Assembly: GCA_038496445.1 (NCBI GenBank)
Contig: JALMLS010000369.1
Span: 130,327-194,326, forward strand
DNA from: Trichosphaerium sp. ATCC 40318
Taxonomy: Eukaryota > Protista > Tubulinea
DNA length: 64,000 nt
Direction of reading: 5' to 3'
The translations under genes were made by a program, and so were the position numbers. Shown here piece by piece: positions 37,741 through 64,000 of this stretch (position 1 is the stretch's first letter; every line of letters starts with the position of its first letter). The notes under the pieces were generated by a model, which made no database searches, was not told where the DNA came from, and saw only the letters and a program-made list of their open reading frames with translations.

Positions 37741-40700
37741 ATGCATGCTGTAGGCACGTGTTTATTTTATTAATATATTGGCGGACTTTAACTAGGTTAG
37801 TTAAATCAGGAAATCTGTTGCTATTAGTCTTTGCGAATCTTTTTGTTGTAGCATACTCGGCTGCTACACAGTTTGAGAGAGCAGGAGAGGCTGTTATGTA
37901 TGGAAACAGTTCAAGAATTGTAAGTTCAAGAGCGTAACCCAAACAGAAGCCTAATGTATCTACAGCCTGCGCAGTTTGGCTTTTTTGGAGCTACCTCAAG
38001 TACAGCTGACACTGTTCCTATATTTGTTCGTGCCTATTTCAGTAGGCAACAAGGTGTAAAGCACTTTTTGGATAGCTGGACCTCGTCTTCGGCAAGTAGT
38101 TTACCAAATTCAGTTTTAATCATTCGTAGAATGCGATAGAACAGCATACAGCCTGTGAAAGTGAGTGTCTCACACGCGTGAAACCTGGTGTAATATTAAC
38201 GGAGAGCCCGTTCAATACGGGAGGATGGTCTATTAAAGAAGAAACACATGGTGTGCTTATCAAACATCGAGGAACATCATTCGAAATGTTAAACACGTAC
38301 TAAAGTGATTGTTTTTTAGTTGCCTATGCTTACCAATAAAAGCACTCGATTTCGAAGACCACCTCACCCTGGCTTGTTTGGCACCTTTTTCGATGTTATA
38401 GAAATATACGTTATTGAAGGGACGCTTGCTATTGCCAGGTAAGCGAAATTACAGTTACTTATGGATTGTTGATCACTGTTCAAAGGCTTGTATTCTCTGA
38501 TGGTATAATTATTGATATGATTCAAGTGGAAGATTCGTTTGATATGCCGACAGTAGCTAATTGTAGTGGTGCTCTTTGCGTTGATACAACCGATTTAATG
38601 TTTGGTAAGTTAATGTTCCTATTATGAGGTGCATTTACGCTTTGTAGTTGTTGATGCTTCTCAAAATGTGTTGAGTGATGAAAATTGTGAGGAAAGAGGT
38701 AAACGCGGAAAAGTTATTGTATTAACTCAAATTCAAGGATCAATGTGTACTCAAGGGCCTGGTGGATATGGTTCTTTCAATAGAGCATCATACGAAGAGT
38801 GTTGCACACACTTAAACTGGGACTTGTACTTTCAATTTATGATTGATGTGATCACTCCACTCAAACTTGGAGAGTATGGATATCGTACTGGTATCACGTT
38901 GTATCGAGATACAGCTCAAGTTGTATTGCCTTTGGGGAGTCACTCCAAATCTTACTTTCTCGAGCAACTCAACAATACTCGATCGGTAAACTTAGTAGGC
39001 GGATGCCACAATGTCACAACCGGTAAGCATGATTCCCAACTTATAAGTATTTTTGTGTAATGTTAAATGTTGTCAAGGCCTTTCGGTTGCACGTGATCAT
39101 TTCGATAGCCACGGAAGAAATGGACGAAATAAAAAAGTGATGATTGTCAATCAATACCATGGTTCCAAATGTGCTGGTTTTGATTCAAATGACAATATCA
39201 CAAACACTCTCGAATCTGAGGTATCAAAGCAACATAATTTATATGGTATTGAGAAAATATAGGGATTTACAATTCACTCAATTTCAATCGGATCAACAGA
39301 CTCCAATCTTCTACCACTTCCAAATACCGTCAATATCACAAACGCCATATTTCTGTCATCACGTGTTTTACCAATTATTTCACCTCAAATATGTAAACGT
39401 GAGTAGAAAGAAAGCGCTTCTTTGTCACTTCTTCATTTTAATACTCTCCATAGAAGTACGAAGTTTGTGCGGCTCAACATGCAAAGCAGAATGTACATGC
39501 AAACAAGAATGTACATGTCAGAATGCCGGATGCGATGACGCAAATATATGTACAGCAAACAAATGCCGAAGTCCAGACGAAGGATGTCATTATCCTCAAA
39601 ATGATATCTTCCCAAACCTTGATGGGCCAAACATACAATGTACACTTTTAGTTTGTTGTAGTGTTTGACAATTTGTTTAGGTGGCTCACATTCTTTTTGT
39701 AATCCAGATTTTTCATTATTTTTTGTACCACTTAAGGACTGTCAAAGTCGTATGCATTTAACCCCGTACTTTGTTAGCTGCTAATTTTTTTAAAAGCACC
39801 AAACGAATGTTTTTATAGCCTTCCATTTGAGTGCAGTGACTCTATAGCAATCCCATGTGACAGTCCTTGTCCTTCTGGCGATATATGTAACCTATCGTAC
39901 TGTGATATATCAACTGGAACCTGCGTTACTGAAAAAAGAGTTCCTGGATCACCTGCATTTGTTTGTGAAGAAGGAGGATCACATACATTGGATTATTGTG
40001 ACACAAACACTACCAACGAGTTTCCTGTTTCTAATAAGTTTCCAGGGTGTAAAACTGTGAATCTGTCAGATGTACGCTAATGTACTTTATATCTTCACAA
40101 ACCATAACTCTAGATATGCCAAGAACAAACACCACCATGTATGATATACAACCCAAACATAACAAGTTGGCACTTGGCTCCATTTCAAATTCCAGAAGCT
40201 CCAAATCAAACATTCTACAATCCAGAATGCATCTACGAACCTGATCCAAATTGTTTCAGTGATATACTCCCTCTCGCACCCACAACAATACCTCCCACAA
40301 CCTCATCACCTACAACTACTCCACCGACAACACTACCTCCGACAACAAGTGCACCACCGACTTCAGCAACTATTGCAACAACTATCCCTTCATCTGGCGC
40401 TGAGTCCTCGGGGTCGTCAGTTGTTGGTACGACAAGGCATCTGATGATTAAAATCTAATTAGATGTAGTGATAGTAGTTGCGTGCGTTGTAGTTTTTCTA
40501 CTACTGTTTGTTGTTGTTGGCCTTTTCATTTGTAACTACCATGTTCGTGGAAAACGTAAAGGCCAACCACAAGTGACAAGTATGACATCTGCTTCCTTGA
40601 AAGCAGGAGAGGATGCTCAAGTGTCACCTTATGGTTTTCTACCGGAACGGCTTTCAACTGTAGACGTTAATCTAAAATCTGTGAATATTAACTACGAGGA

Positions 40701-41754
40701 CTTGATATTTGGCAAACAACTTGGTTTGTTTTAAAAAGAATGTATATGCGCTTAAACTATTTTTTAGGTGAGGGCAGTTTTGGGACCGTTATGCAAGCCG
40801 AGTACAAAGGAAAGAATGTTGCTGTCAAGATATCAAGCCTTGGCGCTGAAGAGAATCAGAATTTTTTAAGAGAGGTTAGTGAGACTTTGTTATGCCATTA
40901 ACTATTGTTCACAGGTTGAAGTAAATATGAGTCTTGATCCTCATCCAAATATTGTTGGCACTTTTGGACTTTGTTTCCTGGATGGAAAACCAATGTTGGT
41001 ATTGGAGTTTATGGCAAATGGATCGCTGGAAGAATTGTATAACACAAAGGAAGATGACTTTACATTCAATGAAATCAAAACGTTTTTAAGTTCAATTGCA
41101 GAAGGGATGACTTTTCTTCATAAAAATAAGATCATTCATCGGTACGTTTAGGTTGCTTATTGATTGGGTTAATGACATTGATTTAGGGATCTTGCATGCA
41201 GAAATATCTTGGTAGACAATTCCAATTAACCAACAAAACTGACCTTGTGTTTCTAGATATCAGAAGATAACGTTCTCAAGATAAGTGATTTTGGAATGTC
41301 AAGGTAAATATTCCGAAGGTAAATATTAGCATTGTCACTAATTTGGTTCAGAAAATCAGCAATCTCAGGAAAAGCACAAGAGACGAAGAACGGTATTGGA
41401 CCAATTCGATGGATGAGTCCAGAGTCCATGCGAAAGTTGTATGAACCTAAAAGTGATGTAAGTCCAAACGCACTTCCAACAATATTGTTAATGGTTTCGC
41501 AGGTTTGGTCATTTGGAATGGTGATGTATGAGCTCATTTACAGGACAATTCCTTTTGGAGAAGTAGATGATTTGTTCGATCTTGCTGTTCGTATCAGAGA
41601 TAAAGGATATACACCTGAATTGGATGATCGTGTTCATCAGCAATGGAAGAGTATCATGGATAACTGCTGGGCATTTTCTTCTTCTGATAGACCAACTTTC
41701 AATAAGTTAAAAACATCCATTAGTAACGCAACTCAGTTCGTAACTAATGAGTAG
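37741..41754 (+). CDS. Receptor tyrosine-kinase-like protein RTK-2 (same architecture as RTK-1)
   Basis: Signal peptide, FVVVDASQNV vWA strand, Cys repeats, PT stalk, TM IVVACVVVFLLLFVVVGLFIC, GEGSFG, HRDLACRN and GPIRWMSPES. Confidence 0.9.
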
Positions 41755-41836
41755 CTTTAACCTGTGGCAGAATAGTACTTTTACTTTTCTTTTGCTAAGG
41801 TACTGTACCTTGTTGCTTATGTTGTAACAGCCCTTA

Positions 41837-44455
41837 ATGAGCATCACGTGGTACTTGTATGTACTCACTATCGTGTTACTTTTCCCTCAAACGCTTCAGC
41901 AACGTTATGTAAATAAAATATCAAAATCAGTGCGAGTATGTTGCCTGTAGCCTTACTACGCTTAAATAACGATAAAAATAGGGATTTAAAGAGTCACAAG
42001 CTCTAAGTATATACAGCGCTTCTGAAAATCCGCTAGCAGTGCCTCAAGATGTTTTCTCGGCGATGTATGAAGACAATATAGCGTTATGGGGAGATATGCC
42101 AAAGAAAGACGCTTACGTTAATTATATGCGAACACAAACTGGAAATGTTGATAGCGCGAGGTAACTAATCACGTGACATATCAAAAAAAATTTTGAGAAT
42201 TCCACGTGTAACGAAAAGGTTAAAAATTTTTTTAGGTTGCTTTTGGAATTCGGCATGGTTCCTTCTGTGAAAGCTTCGCAGTCTCCACTGCATGTTGCCA
42301 TTGCAAAGGAGAGTGTTGACACTGTTGAAGAAATCCTTGAACAAAGTACGTGTTTGCAAAATTCACGTGATTAATTGTTATTCGAAGGCACAAGTGTAGT
42401 TGTTATAGATCAAGCGGAGGATGATGGTGTAACGCCGTTAATATCAGCTGTTATGGTTGGCAACGTTGAGGTTGTCAAATTACTGCTTGGAGAGGTTCGT
42501 CAAATCCCTTGAGGATACGTTTGTTTTAATTTAACTGTAGGGTTCAGATACAGAAGCAACTGCAAGAAATGGTATGAACCCTTTATTAGTTGCAGCGTCT
42601 ATGAATCATGTTGAAGTTATAGAAGCACTTCTAGGTACTAGCCCACATAACATTATAGTTATTTAATCCAAATGTAGACTATGGCGCGTATATTGATGCA
42701 AGGCATTCATTTGCTGGATCTCACGCTCTTCACTTCGCTGCAGAAATGGATTGTGCTGAAGGTATTAGTAACATTAGCTTATATTCAATGTTGTTTCTTA
42801 CATTTAGCCAGCAATTAAAGTGCTTTGCGAAAGGGGAGCAGACGTTGAAGCTGAGAAAATTCATGGAGGCACAGCTCTTCATATTGCAGCTGAATCGAAT
42901 CACCCTAAGGTTGTAAAAGAATTAATCACAACATGTAAGGCGGATACAGAGAAAAAGCTATTGAATGACACAACACGTACGCTCAAACAAGATCTCTACC
43001 TCAATCTTACAACAAAAAAGCATTGTATCTTGCAGCTTCAAAAGGAAATGTTGAGGTTGTAAAAATCCTCTTAGAACATCAAGCTAATACCGACTTTGTC
43101 ATGCCAGTTGGTACTACTCTTGTAAAACTGAATGGTTTTAATGATATTCGATTCAGGTGTAATGTCACGTGCTGTTACTGCTCCGAAAGAAAAGGCTAAA
43201 AAAAATAGCATGGAAGAGTACTTTGCTTCACTTCATAACCCAGGTTCTAGTCCTTCCAGTAACAGTTTTGAAGCTGGTAATGGCGCTACTGCACTTCACG
43301 CAGCAGTTGAGAATGGTCATATAAAGGTAGTGAAGTTACTGCTTGATCATGGCGCACGGCAGTTACAGTCTATGGAAGGTACAGCCAATTAAAAATCTAT
43401 TATTCTGATCTTCTAACATAGGAGCGACTCCACTTCATATCGCTGCACAGTATAATAGGCCAAAAATTGCAAAACTGTTGATTAATAGTGGTGCCCAACT
43501 AAATGCACAGAGTACTCGAGATGGATCAACTGCGATACATATGGCTATGAGATCAAGCAAGGCACTCGTTGTATTTCTTGGTTTTTTCTGATTGTCTTTA
43601 CTAGAGTGTTTTGAAAGTACTATTAGATTCTGGAGCGGAGGTGTCTGTCCCAACGTTTGAAGGAGTTACAGCGCTTCACATGGCATTACATAGATCGCAG
43701 GATCAATTGGCGATAAAGTTTATTAAAGCTGGGGCAAACTTGAATGCAATGACATTACAAGGATACACTCCCCTTCATCTTGCTGTTGAAAGATCCGATC
43801 CTGGATTGGTTAAAATGATGCTTTCAAAAGGAGCAGACACTGAAAAGGTAAAGAAAAGCTTAGAATAACAAAGCAAAGAAGTGAAGACTTCGAATTCATC
43901 TCTCATAGTATTGTCTACTAACTTTAAGTCAGAAAACAGAGCAAGGCTTAACGCCTTTGATAATGGCAGTACGATCTAATAATCCAAAAACTTTGTTAGT
44001 ATTGCTCAAGCACGGTGCCAACACCGAAACAAAAATTGGTATGAAAGCAACAGCACTTCATCTTGCTGTTCAAAAGAAATATGAGAGTATTGTAAGATTG
44101 CTTGTTAAGTACAATGCAAACATTAATGCGAGATTGACAACTGGCCAAACACCTCTTTTCATTGCTTCAGAAGATGGATTAGTTAATGTCGTCAAGTTGC
44201 TTTTGAAGAAGGGAGTGCGAGCTATAGATGTAAGAAATTCAGCAGGGCTGACGCCATATATGATGGCAGTAGCAAACCGTACGCTTAGAGGTGAAATAAC
44301 ACGTGTACACTTACAATATTTCAGGTCATTTTGAAGTTGCTGATCTCTTACTTAAAGCTGGTGCTGATAGAAATGCAGTGGATAAAAAGGGACGAAGCAT
44401 TGAAGAATTAATAATGCGAAAAAACATAGTGAAGCGCAATAGTGTCAAAACCTAA
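41837..44455 (+). CDS. Ankyrin-repeat protein with predicted signal peptide (copy 1)
   Basis: More than 10 G.T(A/P)LH.A repeats. First exon MSITWYLYVLTIVLLFPQTLQ splices in frame. Confidence 0.85.
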
Positions 44456-44499
44456 TAATCTATTTACTGTTCACATTTTTGTGGTTTGTTATCTTTTTT

Positions 44500-46729
44500 C
44501 TATCTCCACAATAGTTCTATGGCGAGCACACAAACCAATAAAATAAAATGTACACCTAGAGCTGTTAAATACATTACGTTATATACACGTACCAACAGTC
44601 GAACAAGAAGACGGTGGACCTTTTGTTGGCGCGGTAGTAGATATCGGCGGTACAGTCATCGGTGACATAGTAGCAGGTGAAAGCGTTGTTGGAGATACAG
44701 TATTTTGAGAACCAGTTGGAGGTATTGTACCTACACATGTGTAAATAAACCATAGGTGTTGAAAGACGTACAATTTAAGCTCAATGGGAAGATATCATTT
44801 TGTGGAAAGTAACATCCTTCGTCTGGACTTCGACATTCGTTTGCTGTACACGAATTTGTGTCGTCGCATCTAGCATTCTGACATGTACATTCTTGATTGC
44901 AAGTGCATTCTGCTTTGCATGCTGGGCCACACAAACTTCGTACTTCTGTTCCTGTGTAGTGTTAACCAAACGGTGAATGGTATTTTTCGTTACCTTGACA
45001 TAATTCACTTTTAAAGGCCCGTAAAACACTTGATATAATGCTAATACGTGCAATGTTAATGTTGAAAGAAAATGGTAACACTTTATTAATTCCAATTCCG
45101 ATTGTCAGTGAGTAAAGTGCAAATCCCTATTTTTTCTCAATAAATAAAATTGTGTTGCTTTGATACCTCAGATTCGAGAGTGTTTGTGATATTGTCATTT
45201 GAATCAAAACCATCACATTTGGAACCACGATATTGATTGACAATCATCACTTTTTTATTTCGTCCATTTCTACCATATTTATCGAAATGATCACGTGCAA
45301 CCGAAAGACCTTGAAATACAAATATTAGATTCAACAACTCCGGTGAAATAACAAATCTACCTGTTGTAACATCATCACATCCTCCCAGTAAGTTGATAGT
45401 ACGAATGTTGTTGAGTTGTTCAAGAAAGTAAGATTTGGAGTGGCTCCCCAAAGGCAATACAACTTGAGCTGTATCTCGATACAACGTGATACCAGTACGA
45501 TATCCATACTCTCCAAGTTTGAGTGGAGTGATCACATCAATCATAAATTGAAAGTACAAGTCCCAGTTTAAGTGTGTGCAACACTCTTCGAGTGATGATC
45601 TATTGAAATAACCATATCCACCGCTAGGCCCTTGACTACACTCGGATGCTAATGTATTTTTGTTAAGTAACAAATAAATAAGGCTCTATTTATACCTGCT
45701 GTACCACACGTCAAAGTGTGTAAGACATTTTGAGAAGCACCAACAACTACAAAGCGTAAACACACTTGTGGAGATGAATAAGTTAAAAGTTGTAAGAACT
45801 GACCAAACATCAAATCTGTTGTATCAATGCAAAGGGCATCAGTACAATTATCCATTACTGGAAAGTTGCTGGATGTTGGACTCCCAATATCAACAATAAC
45901 ATCATCTGAAAATACAATCCTATTTTCAAAAAATGAGTGACAACGAGACTAACACTTTATAATGCAATACGCTTCTCCTTACCTGGCTAGTTCCGTTGTT
46001 CCTTCAATGTAGTATAACTCTACAACATCTAAAAATGTACCAAATACACTTAGATCCCGTTCTCTTTGGAACCGAGTCCTTTAATAAGCAACAATTAGCA
46101 TCACAATAATCCAAAATACCAAACTGTTGTACGTATTTACAACAATGTGAGAAGGTAATGTTGATCGATGCTTGATTGTCACGTGGTGCGTTTCTTCTTT
46201 GTCAAGCCATGACATGGCATCAAATGGGTTCTCACTCAGACCGATATTGTCTTTCACTCGTCTGAGGCATTGAGTTTCGCATACTGTGTACTGTACAAGC
46301 GACCTCTAAGAACGATTAAAATAGAAGTTGTAATAAATAGTCGACATGCCGAAGAAGATGACCAGTTTTCTCCAAAGTACTTCTCAGTACTTTCTCTATT
46401 GAAGTAGACGTCTGCAGTTTCGATAGTATCATTTTGACTAAACACGTGATACCCAAAAGATCCATATTGTACAGCCTTGAAAGCACGTGTCAGTTGGTCA
46501 ACGTTTAATGGATATTTAAAGCGCGCCGTAAAACTGTACGTACAATACTTGTATTTTTTCCATACATAACGGCTTCTGTGTCAAGATCATAGCTTGATGC
46601 GTCTACCATAAACTGTAACAAGACTGACAATATTATTATTTGTAAGGCACCTAATCAGCGGTATGTTATACTCAACATGGATACAATCGTGGTTGTTCTA
46701 CTTATACACAACGTACGTATCGAATACAT
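44500..46729 (-). CDS. Kinase-less vWA/Cys-rich surface protein, short form (copy 1)
   Basis: Signal MYSIRALQIIILSVLLQFMVDA, the same vWA core as the RTKs, one Cys repeat, a PT stalk and a short hydrophobic tail. The last-exon frame is uncertain. Confidence 0.75.
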
Positions 46730-46745
46730 GTGAACAATCTTTTTT

Positions 46746-47381
46746 ATGAATGAAGATGTGGAACATTTCAAGCGTTTGGTTGGACTGAACAAGACTGTCA
46801 ATATCGAAGGACACAATAGGCAACAACAACAACAATGGCGAGTAGCAATCAAAACAACAACAGCAATGCAAAAAGACTTAAAGTGGTGGCATGATATGAT
46901 GGACCTATGGAATGGTAAGGCAATTTTACTATGTCCATTACCATTATCAAAAGGTTTGTTTCAAACAGACGCTTCAAACATAGCAGCAGGCGCGTTTTTA
47001 AATGGTTCATGGCTTATCCATGTCTTTACAAAAGAAGAAAAAAAATGGCATATCAATGTTAAGGAGATGTATGCGGTGTGGATGGCAATAAAAGAATGGA
47101 AACACTTATTTGCCAATAAACTTATCAACAATTTATTAGTGGATAATACAGGAGTAGTTGCATCAGTCAACAGACTGGTAATGCGCAATTCCAGAGCTAT
47201 GAAGATGATATACGATCTGCATAAATGGTCGGCAGCATTCGGATTCCGGCTTACTGCAACTTGGATTCCCTCAGAAGAAAATACCCTTGCTGACGCTTTA
47301 AGTAGACTGCAAACACAACAATTTTATACCAAAGCAAATCAATTAGGCTTTTTTAATGTAACAGGACGTTTTATTAAATAA
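46746..47381 (+). CDS. DIRS-type RNase H fragment (RT core deleted)
   Basis: DLKWW, QTDAS, HINVKEMYAV, VDNTGVV and WIPSEENTLADALSR. Confidence 0.85.
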   Translation: MNEDVEHFKRLVGLNKTVNIEGHNRQQQQQWRVAIKTTTAMQKDLKWWHDMMDLWNGKAILLCPLPLSKGLFQTDASNIAAGAFLNGSWLIHVFTKEEKKWHINVKEMYAVWMAIKEWKHLFANKLINNLLVDNTGVVASVNRLVMRNSRAMKMIYDLHKWSAAFGFRLTATWIPSEENTLADALSRLQTQQFYTKANQLGFFNVTGRFIK

Positions 47382-47468
47382 ATTTATTTAGAATTCTTAA
47401 CAGAAGTACAAAACAAACGTATTAGAATCCTGCGAGAGGCCTATCCCAGAAGTACAAGCAATAATAGA

Positions 47469-48449
47469 ATGTCAGCTATAAAAGCAGTAGTTATTGCACT
47501 GCTCAAGCTCAATATTCCACAAAGTCAATGGATGCCTTTGAGCTCTCAACACATGCAACTGGTAGTAGCATTGTGGGCAAAAGAATCAGCAGAGGAAGAG
47601 GGGTTAAAGCCTGACACTATCCGCGTATACTTCTCACATTGGGCATGGCTTTCGAAAAGATTAGGTTATGCTGACCCAAGAGAAAATTGTGTATTATATC
47701 ATGATATGTTAAGAGGCCTTAAAAGGAAGGTAGGAGATAGAGTAGACAGAAAACGACCTATGACAGCAGTGATGTTATTGAACATAAGAAAAAAAGTGGA
47801 TTTGCGACAAAACAAGGATCTGGTTTATTGGACAGCAGCATTAATGGCATTTTGGGGAATGCTAAGGATAGGTAACTTGGTTCCTCGTAAAGTAGCAGAA
47901 TTTAGTGTCGATAGACACGTATCAAGGTCCAACATAGAGTTTGACGGTGATACTTGGTGGTTTACACTTAGACAAACAAAAACAATTCGATTCCGTGAGA
48001 GAAAACACGTAATACCGTTTCTGGATATGGAAGGTCACCCTTTATGCCCTACAACAGCGATAAACAGACTAATTAAACAGGTCAAACCCATACAAGGAAA
48101 ATCCCTGTTTAGACACAAGAACAACGGAAGATGGTCACAAATAACATACTCTAAATTTGTAAAATGGACCAAACTAATGGTTTCAAAGATGGTAAATAAT
48201 ACTAAAGAATATGCTGGACACTCATACAGGCGTGGCGGAGCAACACATGCAGCTGCAGCAGGAGTTCCTAATGAATGGATAAAATATATTGGCGATTGGA
48301 GCTCAGATGCATATCAAATATACATTGTAAAAAACAAAGAAGACAGATTAATAGCACCAAAATTAATGTTTCAATGGCTTAAACATGGCCTTGATCATAC
48401 AGATCGCGCTGGGGAGGATGGTCAACCTCAACCATGGCTAGAGGATTGA
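47469..48449 (+). CDS. Tyrosine recombinase of the YR retrotransposon
   Basis: FWGMLRIGNL, TKT, LCP, GHSYRRGGAT and GDWSSDAYQIY; catalytic residues present, no introns. Confidence 0.92.
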   Translation: MSAIKAVVIALLKLNIPQSQWMPLSSQHMQLVVALWAKESAEEEGLKPDTIRVYFSHWAWLSKRLGYADPRENCVLYHDMLRGLKRKVGDRVDRKRPMTAVMLLNIRKKVDLRQNKDLVYWTAALMAFWGMLRIGNLVPRKVAEFSVDRHVSRSNIEFDGDTWWFTLRQTKTIRFRERKHVIPFLDMEGHPLCPTTAINRLIKQVKPIQGKSLFRHKNNGRWSQITYSKFVKWTKLMVSKMVNNTKEYAGHSYRRGGATHAAAAGVPNEWIKYIGDWSSDAYQIYIVKNKEDRLIAPKLMFQWLKHGLDHTDRAGEDGQPQPWLED

Positions 48450-49262
48450 CGTGGGTAGAATAAATCCGCTCGTGTGGCTACGCTAGAGCCACCAAAGACT
48501 GAGCGTCTTTCCTCCCAAGCGCGTCTCCCTTATATTGACAACGTTGTCCAATCTAATGAATGAAGATGTGGAACATTTCAAGCGTTTGGTTGGACTGAAC
48601 AAGACTGTCAATATCGAAGGACACAATAGGCAACAACAACAACAATGGCGAGTAGCAATCAAAACATCCCCTCACCCTCCCTAAAATCCTTTTCTTTTTC
48701 TTGTAAAAATTTTTTCTTTATTTTTCCTTCAAACACATTTGCAATTCACACGAGTGTTCTTAAATGTAGAATAAATCCGCTCGTGTGGCTACGCTAGAGC
48801 CACCAAAGACTGAGCGTCTTTCCTCCCAAGCGCGTCTCCCTTATATTGACAACGTTGTCCAATCTAATTGCAAGTTTTGCAGGGTACACAAAAAATACTG
48901 CAAAAAAAATGCAAATCTGAGTAAAAAGATGCTTTCAAACCTTGCTCGCTTTATATATCTATTTAATTATCGATTCAAAATAATTTGAATGCGGATTGGT
49001 GTGTACTAAAATGTCGAAAAAATGTCAAAGTGATATTGAACTGTTCGCCACAAAGGGAGACAACTGGGTTATGGCGCTCAGTCGCCGCTAGGCTCTGCCC
49101 CCCCCAAACCCCCCCTGAAAGGGGGGCTTTCTAAATAGTTCCTATGGCATAATATAGGATAATTAGTGTGCCGAATTTTCGACTTTTTTTTGACAAAGTT
49201 CTACATATTTGGGTTTCCCTGCGGATTAAGTCACCAAAACTAGGGGAAAAAACGGTTTGTTC

Positions 49263-49599
49263 TAGTACTGTTAACGGTCCGACTCAACTCAACTCGACTT
49301 TTTTTGAGAAAACGGTCTGAGTCGACTCAAAAAAAAATCATCTGAAGGTATCTACATCATTTTTTTTCTGGAGTTTCACTGTCACAAGCATCCATGTGTG
49401 GCCACACACCTGATTTGGTGGAATACACCCTTTTAGCCATCAATCAGACACTGTGTGATTGCAACAATACGAGAAAAAGAACTTAAAACCAGGTTTTTAC
49501 AATTTAGATGTGTTTTTTTAAGTCGACTCAACTCAGTCCGACTCGACTTTTTGTAAAATCAGTCCGACTCGACTTAAGACTGAGTCATTAACAGTACTA
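49263..49599. mobile_element. hAT-like MITE
   Basis: 12-bp TIR TAGTACTGTTAA/TTAACAGTACTA, near-perfect 8-bp TSD GTTTGTTC/GATTGTTC, and many subterminal GACTC(A/G)AC repeats. Confidence 0.75.
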
Positions 49600-49783
49600 G
49601 ATTGTTCGTTCAATCTACTCAAGTTGGAAGATGGTTTATTAATACTTTAGGAGAGGAGTGAGAACAATGAATGTAAAATTGCTAGGCTGACGCCATACCA
49701 GTAGCAAATAACATGCACACTAGTTCTTGAAGTTGTTCATCACCACGATATTTTTTATTTACTGTAAACATTTTATTGTTTTC

Positions 49784-52700: not shown

Positions 52701-53141
52701 CAAGTGACCTCTACTAACGATTAAAATAGAAGTTGTAACATAAATTAATAGTCAACATGCCGAAGAAGATGACCAGTTTTCTCCAAAGTACTTCTCAGTA
52801 CTTTCTCTATTGAAGTAGACGTCTGCAGTTTCGATAATGTCATTTTGACTAAACACGTAATAGCCAAAAGATCCATATTGTACAGCCTTGAAAGCACGTG
52901 TCAGTTGGTCAACGTTTAATGGATATTTAAAGTGCACCCGTAAAACTGTACGTACAATACTTGTATTTTTTCCATACATAACGGCTTCTGTGTCAAGATC
53001 ATAGCTTGATGCGTCTACCATGAACTGTAACAGGACTGACAATATTATTATTTGTAAGGCACCTAATCAGCGGTATGTTATACTCAACATGGGTACAATC
53101 GTGGATGTTCTACTTATACACAACGTACGTATCGAATACAT
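49784..53141 (-). CDS. Kinase-less vWA/Cys-rich surface protein, long form, probable GPI anchor
   Basis: Signal peptide, vWA, two Cys blocks, WHLAPFQIPEAPNQTFYNPEC, PT stalk, and C-terminal SSCSAIVTDLEMHVIIAISALAIELLWR*. Confidence 0.8.
51550..52088. mobile_element. MITE (PIF/Harbinger- or Kolobok-like) in an intron
   Basis: TIR GGGGCACGCTGAGA/TCTCAGCGTGCCCC flanked by (T)TAA. Absent from the paralogous intron at ~45663 and ~61715. Confidence 0.85.
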
Positions 53142-53438
53142 GTAAACAATCTGTTTTATTGCAAGTTTTACACGCTCTTTTAGTGCACAAAAACCAACGG
53201 AAAAAAACTTTGCTATTCAAAGAACGGTGACAGCAGTTGACTAAAGACTCATGACGGATTCAAAAGCTGGTATACTATCGATAATCCCTGTGAGATGAGC
53301 GTGAACAGTTCCTAGTAGCTTAAGTTATACGTATTTGTGCTGATTGTCGTTTAGCGGTCAGCTTATCCATACAATACTAGTGGCAAGGCAAAGCTCAATT
53401 TAAAAGATGAGCATTTATAATAACGTGACTAAACTGTT

Positions 53439-54390
53439 TTATTCTGTTCTTTCATTCGTGATAATTGGTTTTGAGCTCTCCTTTGCGTTATTTATATCAA
53501 TCTCTAAATCCTTGAAGCTTGGCCTATCAGAACAAGAAAACGCCCAACATTGTGACATAATATGTTGCCAATGAGGGTGGACTAGATCACCGACCCCAGG
53601 TGTATATCCTTCTTCTCTGATCCGCATTGCAAGATCAAACAAGTCTGGTACTTGTCCAAATGGTCTTGTCTTGTAAACAAGCTCCCACATTAGCATTCCA
53701 AATGACCACACCTAAGTCCGTTTGTTTTCTCAATACAAGCTCAATATGTATTTAACTTACATCGCTTTTAGGTTCATACAACCTTTTTATTGACTCAGGA
53801 CTCATCCATCTAATTGGTCAAAAGTTTGTTTTTGTTTTTTTAGCTGATCCTGAAAGTGTCGTTTTTCTGAACTTGATAAGCAAAGGTGATAAATATGTTT
53901 TTTATTGAGTACCTTGACATTCCGAAATCGCTTATTTTGATAACATCGTCTTCTGATATCTATCATTGCACTGTCAATCATGTATCAAAAAACAGAACAC
54001 TACGTACCAATACATTTCTACATGCAAGATCTCTACAAACAATATTTAATTAGTTTCATAATGACAAGCTGCTAAACTACCGATGTATGATCATATTTTG
54101 ATGAAGAAAAGTCATCCCTGATGCGATTGAACTTAAAAACGTTTTGATCTCATTGAATTTAAAATCATCGTTTTTGCTCTCATACAAGTCTTCCAGCGAT
54201 CCATTTGCCATAAACTCCAATACCAACATTGGCTTAGCATCAGCGATACAAAGACCAACAGTACCAACAATATTCGGATGAGGATCGAGACTCATATTTA
54301 CTTCAACCTGTGAGCAATAGTTAATAATAACACAACATAGCCTATCTGTCTCACCTCTCGTAAAAAGTTTTGATTTGCTTCAGGGCCAAG
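53439..54390 (-). pseudogene. Kinase-domain remnant of a third RTK subtype, truncated, with a nonsense codon
   Basis: TGA at 53818-53820 replaces the Gly of GPIRW (GGA in the 63.4 kb copy). The 5' part is cut at the 54390 junction. Confidence 0.75.
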
Positions 54391-57300
54391 AGAACGGGAT
54401 CTAAGTGTATTTGGTACATTTTTTAGATGTTGTAGAGTTATACTACATTGAAGGAACAACGGAACTAGCCAGGTAAGGAGAAGCGTATTGCATTATAAAG
54501 TGTTAGTCTCGTTGTCACTCATTTTTTGAAAATAGGATTGTATTTTCAGATGATGTTATTGTTGATATTGGAGTCCAACATCCCGAAGCCTTCCAGTAAT
54601 GGATAATTGTACTGATGCCCTTTGCATTGATACAACAGATGTGATGTTTGGTCAGTTCTTACAACTTTTAACTTATTCATCTCCACAAGTGTGTTTACGC
54701 TTTGTAGTTGTTGGTGCTTCTCAAAATGTCTTACACACTTTGACGTGTGGTACAGCAGGTATAATAGAGCCTTATTTATTTGTTACTTAACAAAAATACA
54801 TTAGCATCCGAGTGTAGTCAAGGGCCTAGCGGTGGATATGGTTATTTCAATAGAGCATCACTCGAAGAGTGTTGCACACACTTAAACTGGGACTTGTACT
54901 TTCAATTTATGATTGATGTGATCACTCCACTCAAACTTGGAGAGTATGGATATCGTACTGGTATCACGTTGTATCGAGATACAGCTCAAGTTGTATTGCC
55001 TTTGGGGAGTCACTCCAAATCTTACTTTCTTGAGCAACTCAACAATATTCGATCTAAACTTAGTAGGGAGGATGTGAAATGTTACAACAGGTAGATTGTT
55101 ATTTCAAGAGTTGTTGAATTAATATTTGTATTCAAGGCCTTTCGGTTGCACGTGATCATTTCAATAGCCACGGAAGAAATGGACGAAATAAAAAAGTGAT
55201 GATTGTCAATCAATACCATGGTTCCAAATGTGCTGGTTTTGATTCAAATGATATCACAAACACTCTCGAATCTGAGGTATCAAAGCAAAATAATTTATAT
55301 GGTATTGAGAAAATATAGGGATTTACAATTCACTCAATTTCAATCGGATCAACAGACTCCAATCTTCTACCACTTCCAAATACCGTCAATATCACAAACG
55401 CCATATTTCTGTCATCACGTGTTTTACCGATTATTTCACCTCAAATATGTAAACGTGAGTAGAAAGAAAGCGCTTCTTGTCATCTGCTTCATTTTAATAC
55501 TCCATAGAAGTACGAAGTTTGTGCGGCTCAACATGCAAAGCAGAATGTACATGCAAACAAGAATGTACATGTCAGAATGCCGGATGCGATGACGCAAATA
55601 TATGTACAGCAAACAAATGCCGAAGTCCAGACGAAGGATGTCATTATCCTCAAAATGATATCTTCCCAAACCTTGATGGGCCAAACATACAATGTACACT
55701 TTTAGTTTGTTGTAGTGTTTGACAATTTGTTTTTAGGTGGCTCACATTCTTTTTGTAACCCAGATTTTTCATTATTTTTTGTACCACTTAAGGAATGTCA
55801 TAGTCGTATGCATTTAACCTCGTACTTTGTTAGCTGCTAATTTTTTTAAAAGCACCAAACGAATGTTTTTATAGCCTTCCATTTGAGTGCAGTGACTCTA
55901 TAGCAATCCCATGTGACAGTCCTTGTCCTTCTGGCGATATATGTAACCTATCGTACTGTGATATATCAACTGGAACCTGCGTTACTGAAAAAAGAGTTCC
56001 TGGATCACCTGCATTTGTTTGTGAAGAAGGAGGAGCACATACATTGGATTATTGTGACACAAACACTACCAACGAATTTCCTGTATCTAACAAGTTTCCA
56101 GGGTGTAAAGCTGTGAATCTGTCAGATGTACGCTAATGTACTTTATATCTTCACAAACCATATCTCTAGATATGCAAAGAACAAACACCACCATGTATGA
56201 TATACAACCCGAACATAACAAGTTGGCATTTGGCTCCATTTCAAATTCCTGAAGCTCCAAATCAAACATTCTACAATCCAGAATGTCTCTACGAACCTGA
56301 TCCAAGTTGTTTCAGTGATGTACTCCCTCTCGTACCCACAACAATACCTCCCACAACCTCATCACCTACAACTACTCCACCTACAACACTACCTCCGACA
56401 ACAAGTGCACCACCGACTTCAGCAACTATTGCAACAACTATCCCTTCATCTGGCGCTGAGTCCTCGGGGTCGTCAGTTGTTGGTACGACAAGGCATATGA
56501 TGATAAAAATCTAATTAGATGCAGTGATAGTAGTTGCGTGCGTTGTAGCTTTTCTACTACTGTTTGTTGTTGCTGGACTTTTCATTTGTAACTACCATGT
56601 TCGTGGAAAACGTAAAGGCCAACCACAAGTGACAAGTATGACGTCTGCTTCCTTGAAAGCAGGAGAGGATGCTCAAGTGTCACCTTATGGTTTTCTACCT
56701 GAACGGCTTTCAACCGTAGACGTTAATCTAAAATCTGTGAATATTAACTACGAGGACTTGATATTTGGCAAACAACTTGGTTTGTTTTAAAAAGAATGTA
56801 TATGCGCTTAAACTATTTTTTAGGTGAGGGCAGTTTTGGGTCCGTTATGCAAGCCGAATACAAAGGAAAGAATGTTGCTGTCAAGATATCAAGCCTTGGC
56901 GCTGAAGAGAATCAGAATTTTTTAAGAGAGGTTAGTGAGACTTTGTTATGCCATTAACTATTGTTCACAGGTTGAAGTAAATATGAGTCTTGATCCTCAT
57001 CCAAATATTGTTGGCACTTTTGGACTTTGTTTCCTGGATGGAAAGCCAATGTTGGTATTGGAGTTTATGGCAAATGGATCGCTGGAAGACTTGTATAACA
57101 CAAAGGAAGATGACTTTACATTCAATGAGACCAAAACGTTTTTAAGTTCAATCGCGGCAGGGATGACTTTTCTTCATAAAAATAAGATCATTCATAGGTA
57201 CGTTTAGATTGCTTATGATTGGGAATGACATTGATTTAGGGATCTTGCATGCAGAAATATCTTGGTAGACAATTCCAATTAACCAACAAAACTGACCTTG

Positions 57301-57809
57301 TGTTTCTAGATATCAGAAGATAACGTTCTCAAGATAAGTGATTTTGGAATGTCAAGGTAAATATTCCGAAGGTAAATATAGCATAGTTGTCACTAATTTG
57401 GTTCAGAAAATCAGCAATCTCAGGAAAAGCACAAGAGACCAAGAACGGTATTGGACCAATTCGATGGATGAGTCCAGAGTCCATGCGAAAGTTGTATGAA
57501 CCTAAAAGTGATGTAAGTCCAAACGCACTTCCAACAATATTGTTAATGGTTTCGCAGGTTTGGTCATTTGGAATGGTGATGTATGAGCTCATTTACAGGA
57601 CAATTCCTTTTGGAGAAGTAGATGATTTATTCGATCTTGCTGTTCGTATCAGAGATAAAGGATATACACCTGAATTGGATGATCGTGTTCATCAGCAATG
57701 GAAGAGTATCATGGAAAACTGCTGGGCATTTTCTTCTTCTGATAGACCAACTTTCAATAAGTTAAAAACATCCATTAGTAACGCAACTCAGTTCGTAACT
57801 AATGAGTAG
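54391..57809 (+). pseudogene. Chimeric 5'-truncated RTK-3: kinase-less-type 5' part joined to RTK-2-type 3' part
   Basis: 54391-~55100 is the reverse complement of the short form (~61.4-62.1 kb), and ~55135-57809 matches RTK-2. No signal exon, and there are indels near 54570 and 55050-55260. Confidence 0.65.
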
Positions 57810-57892
57810 CGTTTGCCTTTTGGCAGAATAGTACTTTTACTTTTCTTTTGCTAAGGTACTGTACCTCGTTGCTTATGTTGTAACAGCCCTTA

Positions 57893-60507
57893 ATGAGCAT
57901 CACGTGGTACTTGTATGTACTCACTATCGTGTTACTTTTCCCTCAAACGCTTCAGCAACGTTATGTAAATAAAATATCAAAATCAGTGCGAGTATGTTGC
58001 CTGTAGCCTTACTACGCTTAAATAACGATAAAAATAGGGATTTAAAGAGTCACAAGCTCTAAGTATATACAGCGCTTCTGAAAATCCGCTAGCAGTGCCT
58101 CAAGATGTTTTCTCGGCGATGTATGAAGACAATATAGCGTTATGGGGAGATATGCCAAAGAAAGACGCTTACGTCAATTATATGCGAACACAAACTGGAA
58201 ATGTTGATAGCGCGAGGTAACTAATCACGTGACATATCAAAAAAAATTTTGAGAATTCCACGTGTAATGAAAGGTTAAAATTTTTTAGGTTGCTTTTGGA
58301 ATTCGGCATGGTTCCTTCTGTGAAAGCTTCGCAGTCTCCACTACATGTTGCCATTGCAAAGGAGAGTGTTGACACTGTTGAAGAAATCCTTGAACAAAGT
58401 ACGTGTTTGCAAAATTCACGTGATTAATTGTTATTCGAAGGCACAAGTGTAGTTGTTATAGATCAAGCGGAGGATGATGGTGTAACGCCGTTAATATCAG
58501 CTGTTATGGTTGGCAACGTTGAGGTTGTCAAATTACTGCTTGGAGAGGTTCGTCAAATCCCTTGAGGATACGTTTGTTTTAATTTAACTGTAGGGTTCAG
58601 ATACAGAAGCAACTGCAAGAAATGGTATGAACCCTTTATTAGTTGCAGCGTCTATGAATCATGTTGAAGTTATAGAAGCGCTTCTAGGTACTTGCCCACA
58701 TTACATAATAGGTACTCAATGCAAATGTAGACTATGGCGCGTATATTGATGCAAGGCATTCATTTGCTGGATCTCACGCTCTTCACTTCGCTGCTGAAAT
58801 GGATTGCGCTGAAGGTATTAGTAACATTAGCTTGTATTCAATGTTGTTTCTTACATTTAGCTAGCAATTAAAGTGCTTTGCGAAAGGGGAGCAGACGTTG
58901 AAGCTGAGAAAATTCATGGAGGCACAGCTCTTCATATTGCAGCTGAATCGAATCACCCTAAGGTTGTAAAAGAATTAATCACAACATGTAAGGCCGACAC
59001 AGAGAAAAAGCTATTGAATGACACAACACGTACGCTCAAACAAGATCTCTACCTCAATCTTACAACAAAAAAGCATTGTATCTGGCAGCTTCAAAAGGAA
59101 ATGTTGAGGTTGTAAAAATCCTCTTAGAACATCAAGCTAATACCGACTTTGTCATGCCAGTTGGTACTAATCTTTGACAGGTGAATGGTTCTAATGATCT
59201 TCGTTTCAGGTGTAATGTCACGTGCTGTTACAGCTCCTAAAGAAAAGGCTAAAAAAAATAGCATGGAAGAATACTTTGCTACACTTCATAACCCAGGTTC
59301 TAGTCCTTCTAGTAACAGTTTTGAAGCTGGTAATGGTGCTACTGCACTTCACGCAGCTGTTGAGAATGGTCACAAAAATGTAGTGAAGTTACTGCTTGAT
59401 CACGGCGCACGGCAATTACAGTCTATGGAAGGTACAGCCAATTAAAAATCTATTGTTTTGATCTTCTAACATAGGAGCGACTCCACTTCATATCGCTGCA
59501 CAGTATAATAGGCCAAAAATTGCAAAACTGTTGATTAATAGTGGTGCCCAACTAAATGCACAGAGTACTCGAGATGGATCAACTGCGATACATATGGCTA
59601 TGAGATCAAGCAAGGCACTCGTTGTATTTCTTGGTTTTTTCTGAATGTCTTTACTAGAGTGTTTTGAAAGTACTATTAGATTCTGGAGCGGATGTGTCCG
59701 TCCCAACGTTTGAAGGAGTTACAGCGCTTCACATGGCATTACATAGATCGCAGGATCAATTGGCGATAAAGTTTATTAAAGCTGGGGCAAACTTGAATGC
59801 AATTACATTACAAGGATACACTCCCCTTCATCTTGCTGTTGAAAGATCCGATCCTGGATTGGTTAAAATGATGCTTTCAAAAGGAGCAGACACTGAAAAG
59901 GTAAAGAAAAGCTTAGAATAACAAGCAAAGAAGTGAAGACGTCGAATTCATCTCCCATTGTCTTGTTTACTAACTTTAAGTCAGAAAACAGAGCAAGGCT
60001 TAACGCCTTTGATAATGGCAGTACGATCTAATAATCCAAAAACTTTGTTAGTATTGCTCAAGCATGGTGCTAACACCGAAACAAAAATTGGTATGAAAGC
60101 AACAGCACTTCATCTTGCTGTTCAAAAGAAATATGCGAGTATTGTAAGATTGCTTGTTAAGCACAATGCAAACATTAATGCGAGATTGACAACTGGCCAA
60201 ACACCTCTTTTCATTGCTTCAGAAGATGGATTAGTTAATATCGTCAAGTTGCTTTTGAAGAAGGGAGTGCGAGCTATAGATGTAAGAAATTCAGCAGGGC
60301 TGACGCCATATATGATGGCAGTAGCAAACCGTACGCTTAGAGGTGAAATAACACGTGTACACTTACAATATTTCAGGTCATTTTGAAGTTGCTGATCTCT
60401 TACTTAAAGCTGGTGCTGATAGAAATGCCGTGGATAAAAAGGGACGAAGCATTGAAGAATTAATAATGCGAAAAAACATAGTGAAGCGCAATAGTGTCAA
60501 AACCTAA
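57893..60507 (+). CDS. Ankyrin-repeat protein with predicted signal peptide (copy 2)
   Basis: Near-identical to 41837-44455. Confidence 0.85.
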
Positions 60508-60551
60508 TAATCTATTTACTGTTCACATTTTTGTGGTTTGTTATCTTTTTT

Positions 60552-62782
60552 CTATCTCCACAATAGTTCTATGGCGAGCACAGAAACCAATAAAATAAAA
60601 TGTATACCTAGAGCTGTTAAATACATTACGTTATATACACGTACCAACAGTCGAACAAGAAGACGGTGGACCTTTTGTTGGCGCGGTAGTAGATATCGGC
60701 GGTACAGTCATCGGTGACATAGTAGCAGGTGAAAGCGTTGTTGGAGATACAGTATTTTGAGAACCAGTTGGAGGTATTGTACCTACACATGTGTAAATAA
60801 ACCATAGGTGTTGAAAGACGTACAATTTAAGCTCAATGGGAAGATATCATTTTGTGGAAAGTAACATCCTTCGTCTGGACTTCGACATTCGTTTGCTGTA
60901 CACGAATTTGTGTCGTCGCATCTAGCATTCTGACATGTACATTCTTGATTGCAAGTGCATTCTGCTTTGCATGCTGGGCCACACAAACTTCGTACTTCTG
61001 TTCCTGTGTAGTGTTAACCAAACGGTGAATGGTATTCTTCGTTACCTTGACATAATTCACTTTTAAAGGCCCGTAAAACACTTGATATAATGCTAATACG
61101 TGCAATGTTAATGTTGAAAGAAAATGGTAACACTTTATTAATTCCAATTCCGATTGTCAGTGAGTAAAGTGCAAATCCCTATTTTTTCTCAATAAATAAA
61201 ATTGTGTTGCTTTGATACCTCAGATTCGAGAGTGTTTGTGATATTGTCATTTGAATCAAAACCATCACATTTGGAACCACGATATTGATTGACAATCATC
61301 ACTTTTTTATTTCGTCCATTTCTACCATATTTATCGAAATGATCACGAGCAACCGAAAGACCTTGAAATACAAATATTAGATTCAACAACTCCGGTGAAA
61401 TAACAAATCTACCTGTTGTAACATCATCACATCCTCCCAGTAAGTTGATAGTACGAATGTTGTTGAGTTGTTCAAGAAAGTAAGATTTGGAGTGGCTCCC
61501 CAAAGGCAATACAACTTGAGCTGTATCTCGATACAACGTGATACCAGTACGATATCCATACTCTCCAAGTTTGAGTGGAGTGATCACATCAATCATAAAT
61601 TGAAAGTACAAGTCCCAGTTTAAGTGTGTGCAACACTCTTCGAGTGATGATCTATTGAAATAACCATATCCACCGCTAGGCCCTTGACTACACTCGGATG
61701 CTAATGTATTTTTGTTAAGTAACAAATAAATAAGGCTCTATTTATACCTGCTGTACCACACGTCAAAGTGTGTAAGACATTTTGAGAAGCACCAACAACT
61801 ACAAAGCGTAAACACACTTGTGGAGATGAATAAGTTAAAAGTTGTAAGAACTGACCAAACATCAAATCTGTTGTATCAATGCAAAGGGCATCAGTACAAT
61901 TATCCATTACTGGAAGGCTTCGGGATGTTGGACTCCCAATATCAACAATAACATCATCTGAAAATACAATCCTATTTTCAAAAAATGAGTGACAACGAGA
62001 CTAACACTTTATAATGCAATACGCTTCTCCTTACCTGGCTAGTTCCGTTGTTCCTTCAATGTAGTATAACTCTACAACATCTAAAAATGTACCAAATACA
62101 CTTAGATCCCGTTCTCTTTGGAACCGAGTCCTTTAATAAGCAACAATTAGCATCACAATAATCCAAAATACCAAACTGTTGTACGTATTTACAACAATGT
62201 GAGAAGGTAATGTTGATCGATGCTTGATTGTCACGCGGTGCGTTTCTTCTTTGTCAAGCCATGACATGGCATCAAATGGGTTCTCACTCAGACCGATATT
62301 GTCTTTCACACGTCTGAGGCATTGAGTTTCGCATACTGTGTACTGTACAAGTGACCTCTACGAACGATTAAAATAGAAGTTGTAATAAATAGTCGACATG
62401 CCGAAGAAGATGACCAGTTTTCTCCAAAGTACTTCTCAGGACTTTCTCTATTGAAGTAGACGTCTGCAGTTTCGATAATGTCATTTTGACTAAACACGTA
62501 ATACCCAAAAGATCCATATTGTACAGCCTTGAAAGCACGTGTCAGTTGGTCAACGTTTAATGGATATTTAAAGTGCACCCGTAAAACTGTACGTACAATA
62601 CTTGTATTTTTTCCATACATAACGGCTTCTGTGTCAAGATCATAGCTTGATGCGTCTACCATGAACTGTAACAAGACTGACAATATTATTATTTGTAAGG
62701 CACCTAATCAGCGGTATGTTATACTCAACAGGGGTACAATCGTGGATGTTCTACTTATACACAACGTACGTATCGAATACAT
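60552..62782 (-). CDS. Kinase-less vWA/Cys-rich surface protein, short form (copy 2)
   Basis: Near-identical to 44500-46729, but the upstream region has no retrotransposon. Confidence 0.75.
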
Positions 62783-64000
62783 GTAAACAATCTGTTTTAT
62801 TGCAAGTTTTACACGCTCTTTTAGTGCACAAAAACCAACGGAAAAAAACTTTGCTATTCAAAGAACGGTGACAGCAGTTGACTAAAGACTCATGACGGAT
62901 TCAAAAGCTGGTATACTATCGATAATCCCTGTGAGATGAGCGTGAACAGTTCCTAGTAGCTTAAGTTATACGTATTTGTGCTGATTGTCGTTTAGCGGTC
63001 AGCTTATCCATACAATACTAGTGGCAAGGCAAAGCTCAATTTAAAAGATGAGCATTTATAATAACGTGACTAAACTGTTTTATTCTGTTCTTTCATTCGT
63101 GATAATTGGTTTTGAGCTCTCCTTTGCGTTATTTATATCAATCTCTAAATCCTTGAAGCTTGGCCTATCAGAACAAGAAAACGCCCAACATTGTGACATA
63201 ATATGTTGCCAATGAGGGTGGACTAGATCACCGACCCCAGGTGTATATCCTTCTTCTCTGATCCGCATTGCAAGATCAAACAAGTCTGGTACTTGTCCAA
63301 ATGGTCTTGTCTTGTAAACAAGCTCCCACATTAGCATTCCAAATGACCACACCTAAGTCGTTTGTTTTCTCAATACAAGCTCAATATGTATTTAACTTAC
63401 ATCGCTTTTAGGTTCATACAACCTTTTTATTGACTCAGGACTCATCCATCTAATTGGTCCAAAGTTTGTTTTTGTTTTTTTAGCTGATCCTGAAAGTGTC
63501 GTTTTTCTGAACTTGATAAGCAAAGGTGATAAATATGTTTTTTATTGAGTACCTTGACATTCCGAAATCGCTTATTTTGATAACATCGTCTTCTGATATC
63601 TATCATTGCACTGTCAATCATGTATCAAAAAACAGAACACTACGTACCAATACATTTCTACATGCAAGATCTCTACAAACAATATTTAATTAGTTTCATA
63701 ATGACAAGCTGCTAAACTACCGATGTATGATCATATTTTGATGAAGAAAAGTCATCCCTGATGCGATTGAACTTAAAAACGTTTTGATCTCATTGAATTT
63801 AAAATCATCGTTTTTGCTCTCATACAAGTCTTCCAGCGATCCATTTGCCATAAACTCCAATACCAACATTGGCTTAGCATCAGCGATACAAAGACCAACA
63901 GTACCAACAATATTCGGATGAGGATCGAGACTCATATTTACTTCAACCTGTGAGCAATAGTTAATAATAACACAACATAGCCTATCTGTCTCACCTCTCG
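62400..64000 (+). repeat. Direct duplication of ~52760-54360 (offset ~9.64 kb)
   Basis: Near-identical vWA 5' exons, intergenic region and kinase exons. Confidence 0.9.
63080..64000 (-). CDS. Kinase domain of third RTK subtype (intact here, continues beyond the window)
   Basis: HPNIVGTVGLC, HRDLACRN, DFGMSR, GPIRWMSPES and VWSFGMLMWEL. Confidence 0.85.

Follow-up and report, generated by a model that had tools for sequence, protein, structure and literature searches.

Several radiations, each with other ectodomains, are assumed in the history of receptor tyrosine kinases (RTKs). Among amoebozoans, seven transmembrane (TM) protein tyrosine kinases have been described in Acanthamoeba and three in Physarum (PMC4053784, PMC4758236), and other surface systems that invite comparison are EhTMKs/Igl of Entamoeba histolytica (PMC2880585), SRK/SLG of Brassica (PMC4031107) and TgrB1/TgrC1 of Dictyostelium (10.1101/2025.08.01.668227). 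We have analysed the final 64 kb of contig JALMLS010000369.1 (C119 below; this whole stretch of 64,000 nucleotides is referred to as the window) of the tubulinean amoeba Trichosphaerium sp. ATCC 40318, which encodes Tyr-type receptor kinases with a von Willebrand factor A (vWA) domain in the ectodomain (RTK1 and RTK2) and kinase-less proteins of the same ectodomain plan (KL-A, KL-B and KL-C). We lean, with some reserve, towards the view that these genes are members of a surface-sensing receptor tyrosine kinase family that is restricted to one lineage, that of a Trichosphaerium-like amoeba, and for which we propose a mechanism and a locus model. The presence of a vWA ectodomain on a Tyr-type kinase is apparently an undescribed design, and a literature search found no vWA-ectodomain RTK in amoebae.

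The Acanthamoeba and Physarum receptors resemble the Trichosphaerium proteins in being single-pass, in their tyrosine kinase (TK) substrate motifs and in their occurrence in SH2-rich genomes; however, no vWA ectodomain is mentioned in the main texts of those reports (PMC4053784, PMC4758236), and the Trichosphaerium family is larger and includes kinase-less paralogues. The EhTMKs are likewise a large amoebozoan family of single-pass kinases, with a Cys-rich ectodomain plan that is reused in a kinase-less surface protein and with many truncated copies (PMC2880585). Yet they combine a CXXC-repeat ectodomain with a tyrosine-kinase-like kinase, whereas here a vWA domain is joined to true TK motifs; the CXXC-repeat ectodomain is absent from the Trichosphaerium family, and no sequence relationship between the two was found. 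In Brassica, a receptor kinase has a linked partner that repeats its ectodomain without the kinase, and the two undergo gene conversion (PMC4031107). SRK, however, has an S-domain and a Ser/Thr kinase, occurs in dozens of haplotypes that diverge strongly and is accompanied by the linked ligand SCR, whereas in Trichosphaerium the kinase is of Tyr type, the ectodomain contains vWA, alleles are 96–99% alike, no small linked ligand gene was seen and conversion is patchy. TgrB1 and TgrC1 are linked amoeba surface genes in a region with duplications and recombination (10.1101/2025.08.01.668227). They form diverging, highly polymorphic, heterodimerizing pairs without a kinase, in contrast to the convergent or tandem paralogues of one vWA plan, with low allelic divergence, described here. 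Tgr proteins have Ig-like IPT/TIG folds. By analogy, the Trichosphaerium family appears to pair a kinase receptor with a kinase-less ectodomain, as do SRK/SLG or TMK/Igl, while being a member of neither.

The assembly used comprises 70.28 Mb in 642 contigs, with short introns; the draft genome was reported as 70.87 Mb with 37.69% GC, the source of DNA being whole-genome-amplified nuclei (PMC10521059). Spliced models were built and compared by script, with the C89 copy and the stretches between clusters left out, and database searches and folds were run on single exons or natural read-through frames. RTK1 and RTK2 proved to be intact genes with the same exon plan (Table 1), in agreement with the initial annotation of this DNA, which had described them as vWA TM kinases; RTK1 lies outside the range 37741–64000 with which that annotation was concerned. 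RTK2 comprises a signal peptide, an N-terminal domain (N-domain, residues ~26–200), the vWA domain (~201–420), two Cys-rich modules, a conserved WHL-PF-IPE module, a Pro/Thr stalk, a TM segment, a juxtamembrane Tyr and the kinase, and models and hydropathy give both proteins the RTK layout of signal peptide, ectodomain, single TM and cytoplasmic kinase. The RTK2-type N-domain (~175 aa) has no Pfam match, and an Atlas search with a piece of it gave no usable match. The RTK2 kinase matches PK_Tyr_Ser-Thr in Pfam, and the best matches of the kinase in PDB (Csk, FAK, insulin receptor and FGFR) are all tyrosine kinases. The motifs quoted in the initial annotation are all where it placed them, and HRDLxxRN and PxRWMxPE, which it assigned to the Tyr type, occur as HRDLACRN and GP(I/V)RWMxPE in all nine kinases checked. 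The juxtamembrane Tyr is kept in most RTKs although that region is only 12–32% identical. There are 46 SH2 matches in the genome; one SH2-domain match (C63:262080–262262) is on the strand opposite to the third C63 vWA RTK gene, ~0.7 kb away from its end. GC-AG introns recur in the family, for example as the third intron in RTK2 and the KL genes (window positions 38092, 52760 and others).

Recognition of the vWA domain draws on Pfam VWA matches (E ~1e-3 per exon, below the gathering score), on profile matches in PDB to the integrin alpha-2 I domain and collagen VI (E 0.006 and 3e-5), and on sequence similarity and the order of elements from strand 1 to strand 4; folds of exon pieces were of low confidence (pLDDT 35 and 54). 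Integrin alpha-I and collagen VI domains are the closest solved relatives of the vWA core, from which the Trichosphaerium domain differs in a Cys-containing insert of ~35 aa after strand 1 and its DxS motif, in a non-canonical metal-ion-dependent adhesion site (MIDAS) and in its fusion to a kinase. Most of the RTKs have His at the MIDAS Thr position, and within the family canonical DxSxS is kept only by the genes on contig C44.

The kinase-less forms with a hydrophobic tail, as first annotated, are also intact, and in all three the C-terminal order is Pro/Thr stalk, S-S-C-S and hydrophobic tail. KL-A and KL-C are without the second Cys-rich stalk module, and KL-C combines the body of KL-A with a 5' region and promoter of the KL-B type. 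Five KL versions are available for comparison, and by eye each has a putative glycosylphosphatidylinositol (GPI) pattern of signal peptide, small-residue omega site, spacer and hydrophobic end with no cytoplasmic tail, the KL-B tail being only moderately hydrophobic on such inspection; a Gpi16 gene is present in the genome. In the N-domain tree the KL genes are nested inside the clade of RTK1, RTK2 and RTK4 (support 99/98; RTK4 is a fourth receptor that the initial annotation did not record), which suggests that they derive from a kinase receptor. RTK2, KL-A, KL-B and RTK4 all lie within ~17 kb, and linkage this tight occurs at one locus only.

Table 1. Features of the vWA receptor locus and its surroundings (window positions)
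Feature	Position	Strand	Remarks
RTK1, vWA receptor Tyr-type kinase	7463..11579	-	Intact; spliced model without stops; 21 exons, ~1052 aa
RTK2	37741..41754	+	Intact; spliced model; 21 exons, 1043 aa
vWA core conversion tract	38761..38975	+	97% DNA identity with KL-A and KL-B; pS 0.07–0.10 vs 0.60 in N-domain
Ankyrin-repeat gene	41837..44455	+	~600 aa; not a family member; first exon inferred
KL-A, kinase-less	44500..46729	-	Spliced model; 13 exons, 537 aa; GPI-like C-terminus
Young tyrosine-recombinase (YR) retroelement	46747..48866	+	RNase H and YR; split direct repeats
KL-B, kinase-less	49784..53141	-	Spliced model; 15 exons, 707 aa; full ectodomain; GPI-like C-terminus
piggyBac-like miniature inverted-repeat transposable element (MITE)	51551..52087	.	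In KL-B intron 7; 14-bp terminal inverted repeats, TTAA flanks; absent from C139 version
RTK4 3' kinase piece	53439..54390	-	Cut at junction; TGA at 53820–53818; full gene at C139:8837–12.8 kb
Inverted KL-C-like piece	54388..55135	+	Exons 5–8; 0–2 differences per 100 columns
'RTK3' body	55137..57809	+	Second version of RTK2 exons 9–21, 97–98% aa identity; purifying selection
Second ankyrin gene version	57890..60510 (ends approximate)	+	Intact; 11 synonymous and 6 replacement private codons
KL-C, kinase-less	60552..62782	-	Spliced model; 13 exons, 537 aa
Second RTK4 kinase piece	63080..64000	-	Truncated by the end of the contig, 28 bp short of where the 54388 junction would recur

The family extends well beyond the window. 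Kinase-bearing members occupy ~17 loci (on C119, C139, C70, C60, C18, C105, C17, C63 and C89), of which the RTK2/KL locus alone carries GPI-like forms, and four further genes on C44 (204–223 kb), the most distant branch, encode proteins with a TM segment and a short Tyr-containing tail but no kinase. Five of the vWA RTKs form two inverted groups at C119:43–81 kb, with strong conversion in the vWA domain and the clearest signal of selection on the N-domain (28% of sites, omega 2.2; omega being dN/dS); a frameshift apparently common to two of them (c119_43 and c119_77) may be a modelling error. A copy at C18:218.9–222.4 kb, close to the C60 gene and without about four N-domain exons, may be a deletion allele or a pseudogene. 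Outside this genome, a word search with the exon-8 alignment found no relatives, and an exon-8 profile run against 1.84 billion proteins, a search covering the vWA exon only, returned one true relative, the metagenome fragment P0002, together with 40 multi-repeat matches of which the named ones were vWA proteins. P0002 lies on a 988-bp metagenome contig (JGI 3300044452) with the intron positions, vWA exons and Cys pattern of the family, indicating that the ectodomain exists in at least one other eukaryote.

Evidence for expression came from assembled RNA contigs of two public runs, not from raw reads. Spliced contigs match exons of RTK2 and of its near copy 'RTK3' (considered below) exactly. 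A 152-nt contig matches KL exon 5 up to the donor site, without the extra T of 'RTK3', and is a hint only of KL transcription; the KL-B-specific exons have little or no contig cover, although contigs cannot show absence.

The near-invariance of the vWA core at the DNA level, to which the initial annotation drew attention, is real: over 150 nt, RTK2 is separated from 'RTK3' and from each of the three KL genes by one or two bases and from RTK1 by eight. Purifying selection alone was rejected as the cause, since the proportion of synonymous differences (pS) between RTK2 and KL-A is 0.07 in the core and 0.60 in the N-domain. The same low-pS core is seen within the distant C119 and C44 clusters, five introns of RTK1 and RTK2 are 91–100% identical while the others are 45–72% identical, tracts of 100–380 bp reach 95–98% identity, and KL-A and KL-B of C139 share changes against their C119 counterparts. 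With a core omega of 0.16, the pattern reflects gene conversion superimposed on purifying selection. The central description thus holds, of one ectodomain plan shared by Tyr-type receptor kinases and kinase-less GPI-like forms, with sequence exchanged between them by gene conversion.

Scripted M1a/M2a site models gave a different picture of where diversification may lie from that first proposed. The initial annotation had named short loops flanking the core as variable sites and had suggested a dN/dS test across paralogues; this test detected no positive selection in the vWA insert and loop so named (likelihood-ratio test (LRT) statistic 0.0), nor in the core, the first Cys module or the kinase, but it gave a modest signal in the N-domain (LRT 14.0, or 9.4 without columns near gaps) and in the second Cys module, or stalk (LRT 19.9, or 16.9 without such columns). 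In null simulations for the N-domain that included conversion but not alignment error, an LRT of 9.4 was reached in none of 16 runs and in one of 8, so that the N-domain signal is suggestive. With five whole ectodomains placed on a single tree, omega came out at 31, a value that we discount as an artefact of recombination.

Two RTKs had been thought to converge on short forms across an ankyrin gene. This is correct for RTK2 and KL-A, but 54604–62800 is a 96.8% copy of 38558–46747, and the second pair is therefore not independent; similarly, 61715–64000 is a 97.6% copy of 52088–54360. The supposed third TM kinase, 'RTK3', begins at 54388 in the middle of the N-domain, without signal peptide or first four exons, and carries four frameshifts; it consists of an inverted 0.75-kb KL piece joined to a second version of RTK2, and we have rejected it as an independent receptor. 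At its left, the 54388 junction abuts the cut RTK4 kinase with 4 bp of microhomology. The switch from KL piece to RTK2-like sequence falls in the vWA core, where KL and RTK2 are blended base by base over positions 55030–55135, amid many 1–2-nt deletions, and an RNA contig at this zone carries the RTK2 letters. At its start, contig C139 has the block in a third version, comprising the end of RTK2, the ankyrin gene, KL-A, KL-B and a full RTK4, with the transposons absent. The three versions are ~2% apart, and in the ankyrin gene each has changes found in it alone, which are rich in synonymous ones. Between the 'RTK3' body and RTK2 there are 23 synonymous and 18 replacement changes (p=1e-5 against neutrality), and such purifying selection fits an allele rather than an old truncated copy.

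Amplified DNA is a known source of chimeras, mostly inverted, and of false duplications in long-read assemblies after multiple displacement amplification (10.64898/2026.06.11.730069). In view of the amplified starting material, the microhomology, the blended switch, the frameshifts, the end of the contig at the same point and the RTK2 letters in RNA, the block at 54.39–64 kb is probably one version of the locus stitched in through an inverted amplification chimera. The real order would then be RTK2 > ANK > < KL-A < KL-B < RTK4 (ANK, ankyrin gene; arrowheads give orientation), in at least three versions ~2% apart. Mere sequencing error can be dismissed as the origin of the block, the SNPs being synonymous-rich. 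Less probable than the chimera, though it deserves to be taken seriously, is a real complex rearrangement, in which a duplication with an inverted triplicated piece arose by two template switches at inverted repeats and 'RTK3' is a recent 5'-truncated pseudogene. Rearrangements of this type are known in human genomes. The geometry would suit one switch at microhomology and one homologous switch within inverted vWA cores, the block has private synonymous SNPs, and the two RTK4 pieces are almost identical, as expected of a recent duplication. However, the blended, deletion-rich switch zone and the homopolymer-type frameshifts look as if mixed reads had been merged into one consensus, the starting DNA had been amplified, the junction is on no other contig of the assembly, and the 'RTK3' body has been shaped by purifying selection. 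Whether artefact or rearrangement, the paired layout occurs once, not twice.

Our working hypothesis for the family is that the variable N-domain and the vWA face would bind an outside ligand on prey, substrate or a neighbouring cell surface, and that clustering would then activate the kinase, leading to phosphorylation of the juxtamembrane Tyr and reading of this mark by SH2 proteins. The KL genes would have arisen from an RTK that lost its TM segment and kinase and acquired a GPI signal, and their products may be GPI-anchored, non-signalling binders acting as co-receptor, decoy or adhesin. The architecture, the gene conversion and the splicing of RTK2/'RTK3' are established, and the ligand, the kinase activity, the GPI anchor and the partnership between RTK and KL are all predictions from sequence; a role in sensing ligands or prey is plausible given the modest diversifying selection in N-domain and stalk. 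Four observations weigh against this hypothesis or the locus model that accompanies it. The MIDAS is non-canonical even in the RTKs, with D-A-S-(Q/E)-N (D-x-S-x-N) and no acidic residue after strand 4. Tyr is absent from the activation loop in all 16 kinases read; most animal RTKs carry one there, so that activation would differ from that of animal RTKs and Tyr specificity rests on the motifs. No KL-specific spliced RNA contig was found among the contigs of the two public runs. Finally, the synonymous-rich SNPs peculiar to the second block require a third haplotype or a real duplication.

The KL proteins may instead be functionally unconnected to the kinases, whether as adhesins in their own right or as secreted by-products of the duplication of RTKs, their linkage and conversion reflecting only a local origin; we regard this as a possible but minority explanation. 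It would account for their restriction to one locus, their variable copy number, the loss of the stalk module in KL-A and the omega of 0.8–1.0 between KL-A alleles, and would sit easily with the scant contig cover of the unique KL-B exons. The MIDAS can be read both ways: all five KL versions have G-A-S-Q-N, with Gly for the first MIDAS Asp, which is in keeping with by-products, yet the changes around the MIDAS face (D to G, H to R, and H to D at the Thr position, where most RTKs have His) are common to all KL versions, which suggests a fixed new surface. Against by-products also stand the open frames, splice sites, signal peptide and tail kept in all five versions and the omega of 0.42 between KL-B alleles.

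A bolder proposal, which we consider quite unlikely, is an independent amoeba TK recognition system built on an integrin-like vWA ectodomain, in which GPI copies with a rewired MIDAS face would be matched co-receptors or ligands, conversion would shuffle specificity modules and the outcome would be discrimination of kin or prey. Very unlikely, in our assessment, is the paired hypervariable self/non-self locus of the initial annotation, with RTK and KL as a matched, co-inherited receptor/ligand pair like TgrB1/TgrC1 or SRK/SLG: although RTK2 and KL are tightly linked with conversion between them, ectodomains of allele-like copies show an excess of replacement over synonymous differences (71/50) relative to ankyrin gene and kinase (14/35; Fisher p=6e-4), the locus is rich in transposons with varying KL copy number, the tgrBC locus rearranges too (10.1101/2025.08.01.668227) and cell–cell contacts are reported to be frequent in Trichosphaerium (PMC10521059), the allele-like pairs at the RTK2/KL locus and c70/c611 are 96–99% identical with omega at or below 1, far from extreme ectodomain polymorphism within the single clonal strain to hand, the vWA loops show no selection, KL N-domains are no closer to the neighbouring RTK (41–46% identity) than to unlinked RTKs (40–47%), GPI-like forms occur at one locus only, and cell fusion was not observed in Trichosphaerium (PMC10521059).

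Several other features of the locus deserve mention. The ankyrin gene starts 82 bp past the RTK2 stop and ends 44 bp from that of KL-A, RTK2 and KL-A converging across it; it has a possible signal peptide, and an ankyrin protein in the secretory pathway would be unusual. The YR retroelement, inserted 17 bp upstream of the point where KL-A translation starts, is missing from the C139 version. It is non-autonomous (RNase H and YR only), has repeats in the order A-ORFs-B-A-B (ORF, open reading frame) and has 100% identical copies on C77, C398, C566 and C452. A second MITE, also with 14-bp terminal inverted repeats, lies at 49261–49601; neither MITE is present in the C139 version, and the insertions are therefore polymorphic within the strain. 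Elsewhere in the genome, small-subunit (SSU) rRNA genes of ~2650 nt, unusually long, occur on many contigs.

The window also carries a caution: in this assembly, made from amplified DNA, what look like tandem pairs may be haplotypes that a chimera has brought together. In the family itself, a domain resembling integrin alpha-I and associated there with adhesion is wired directly to a Tyr-type kinase, and the same design appears in kinase, short-tailed TM and GPI-like versions within one tubulinean amoeba. The family gives experimental access to the question of how prey or substrate is sensed through phosphotyrosine in a free-living amoeba.

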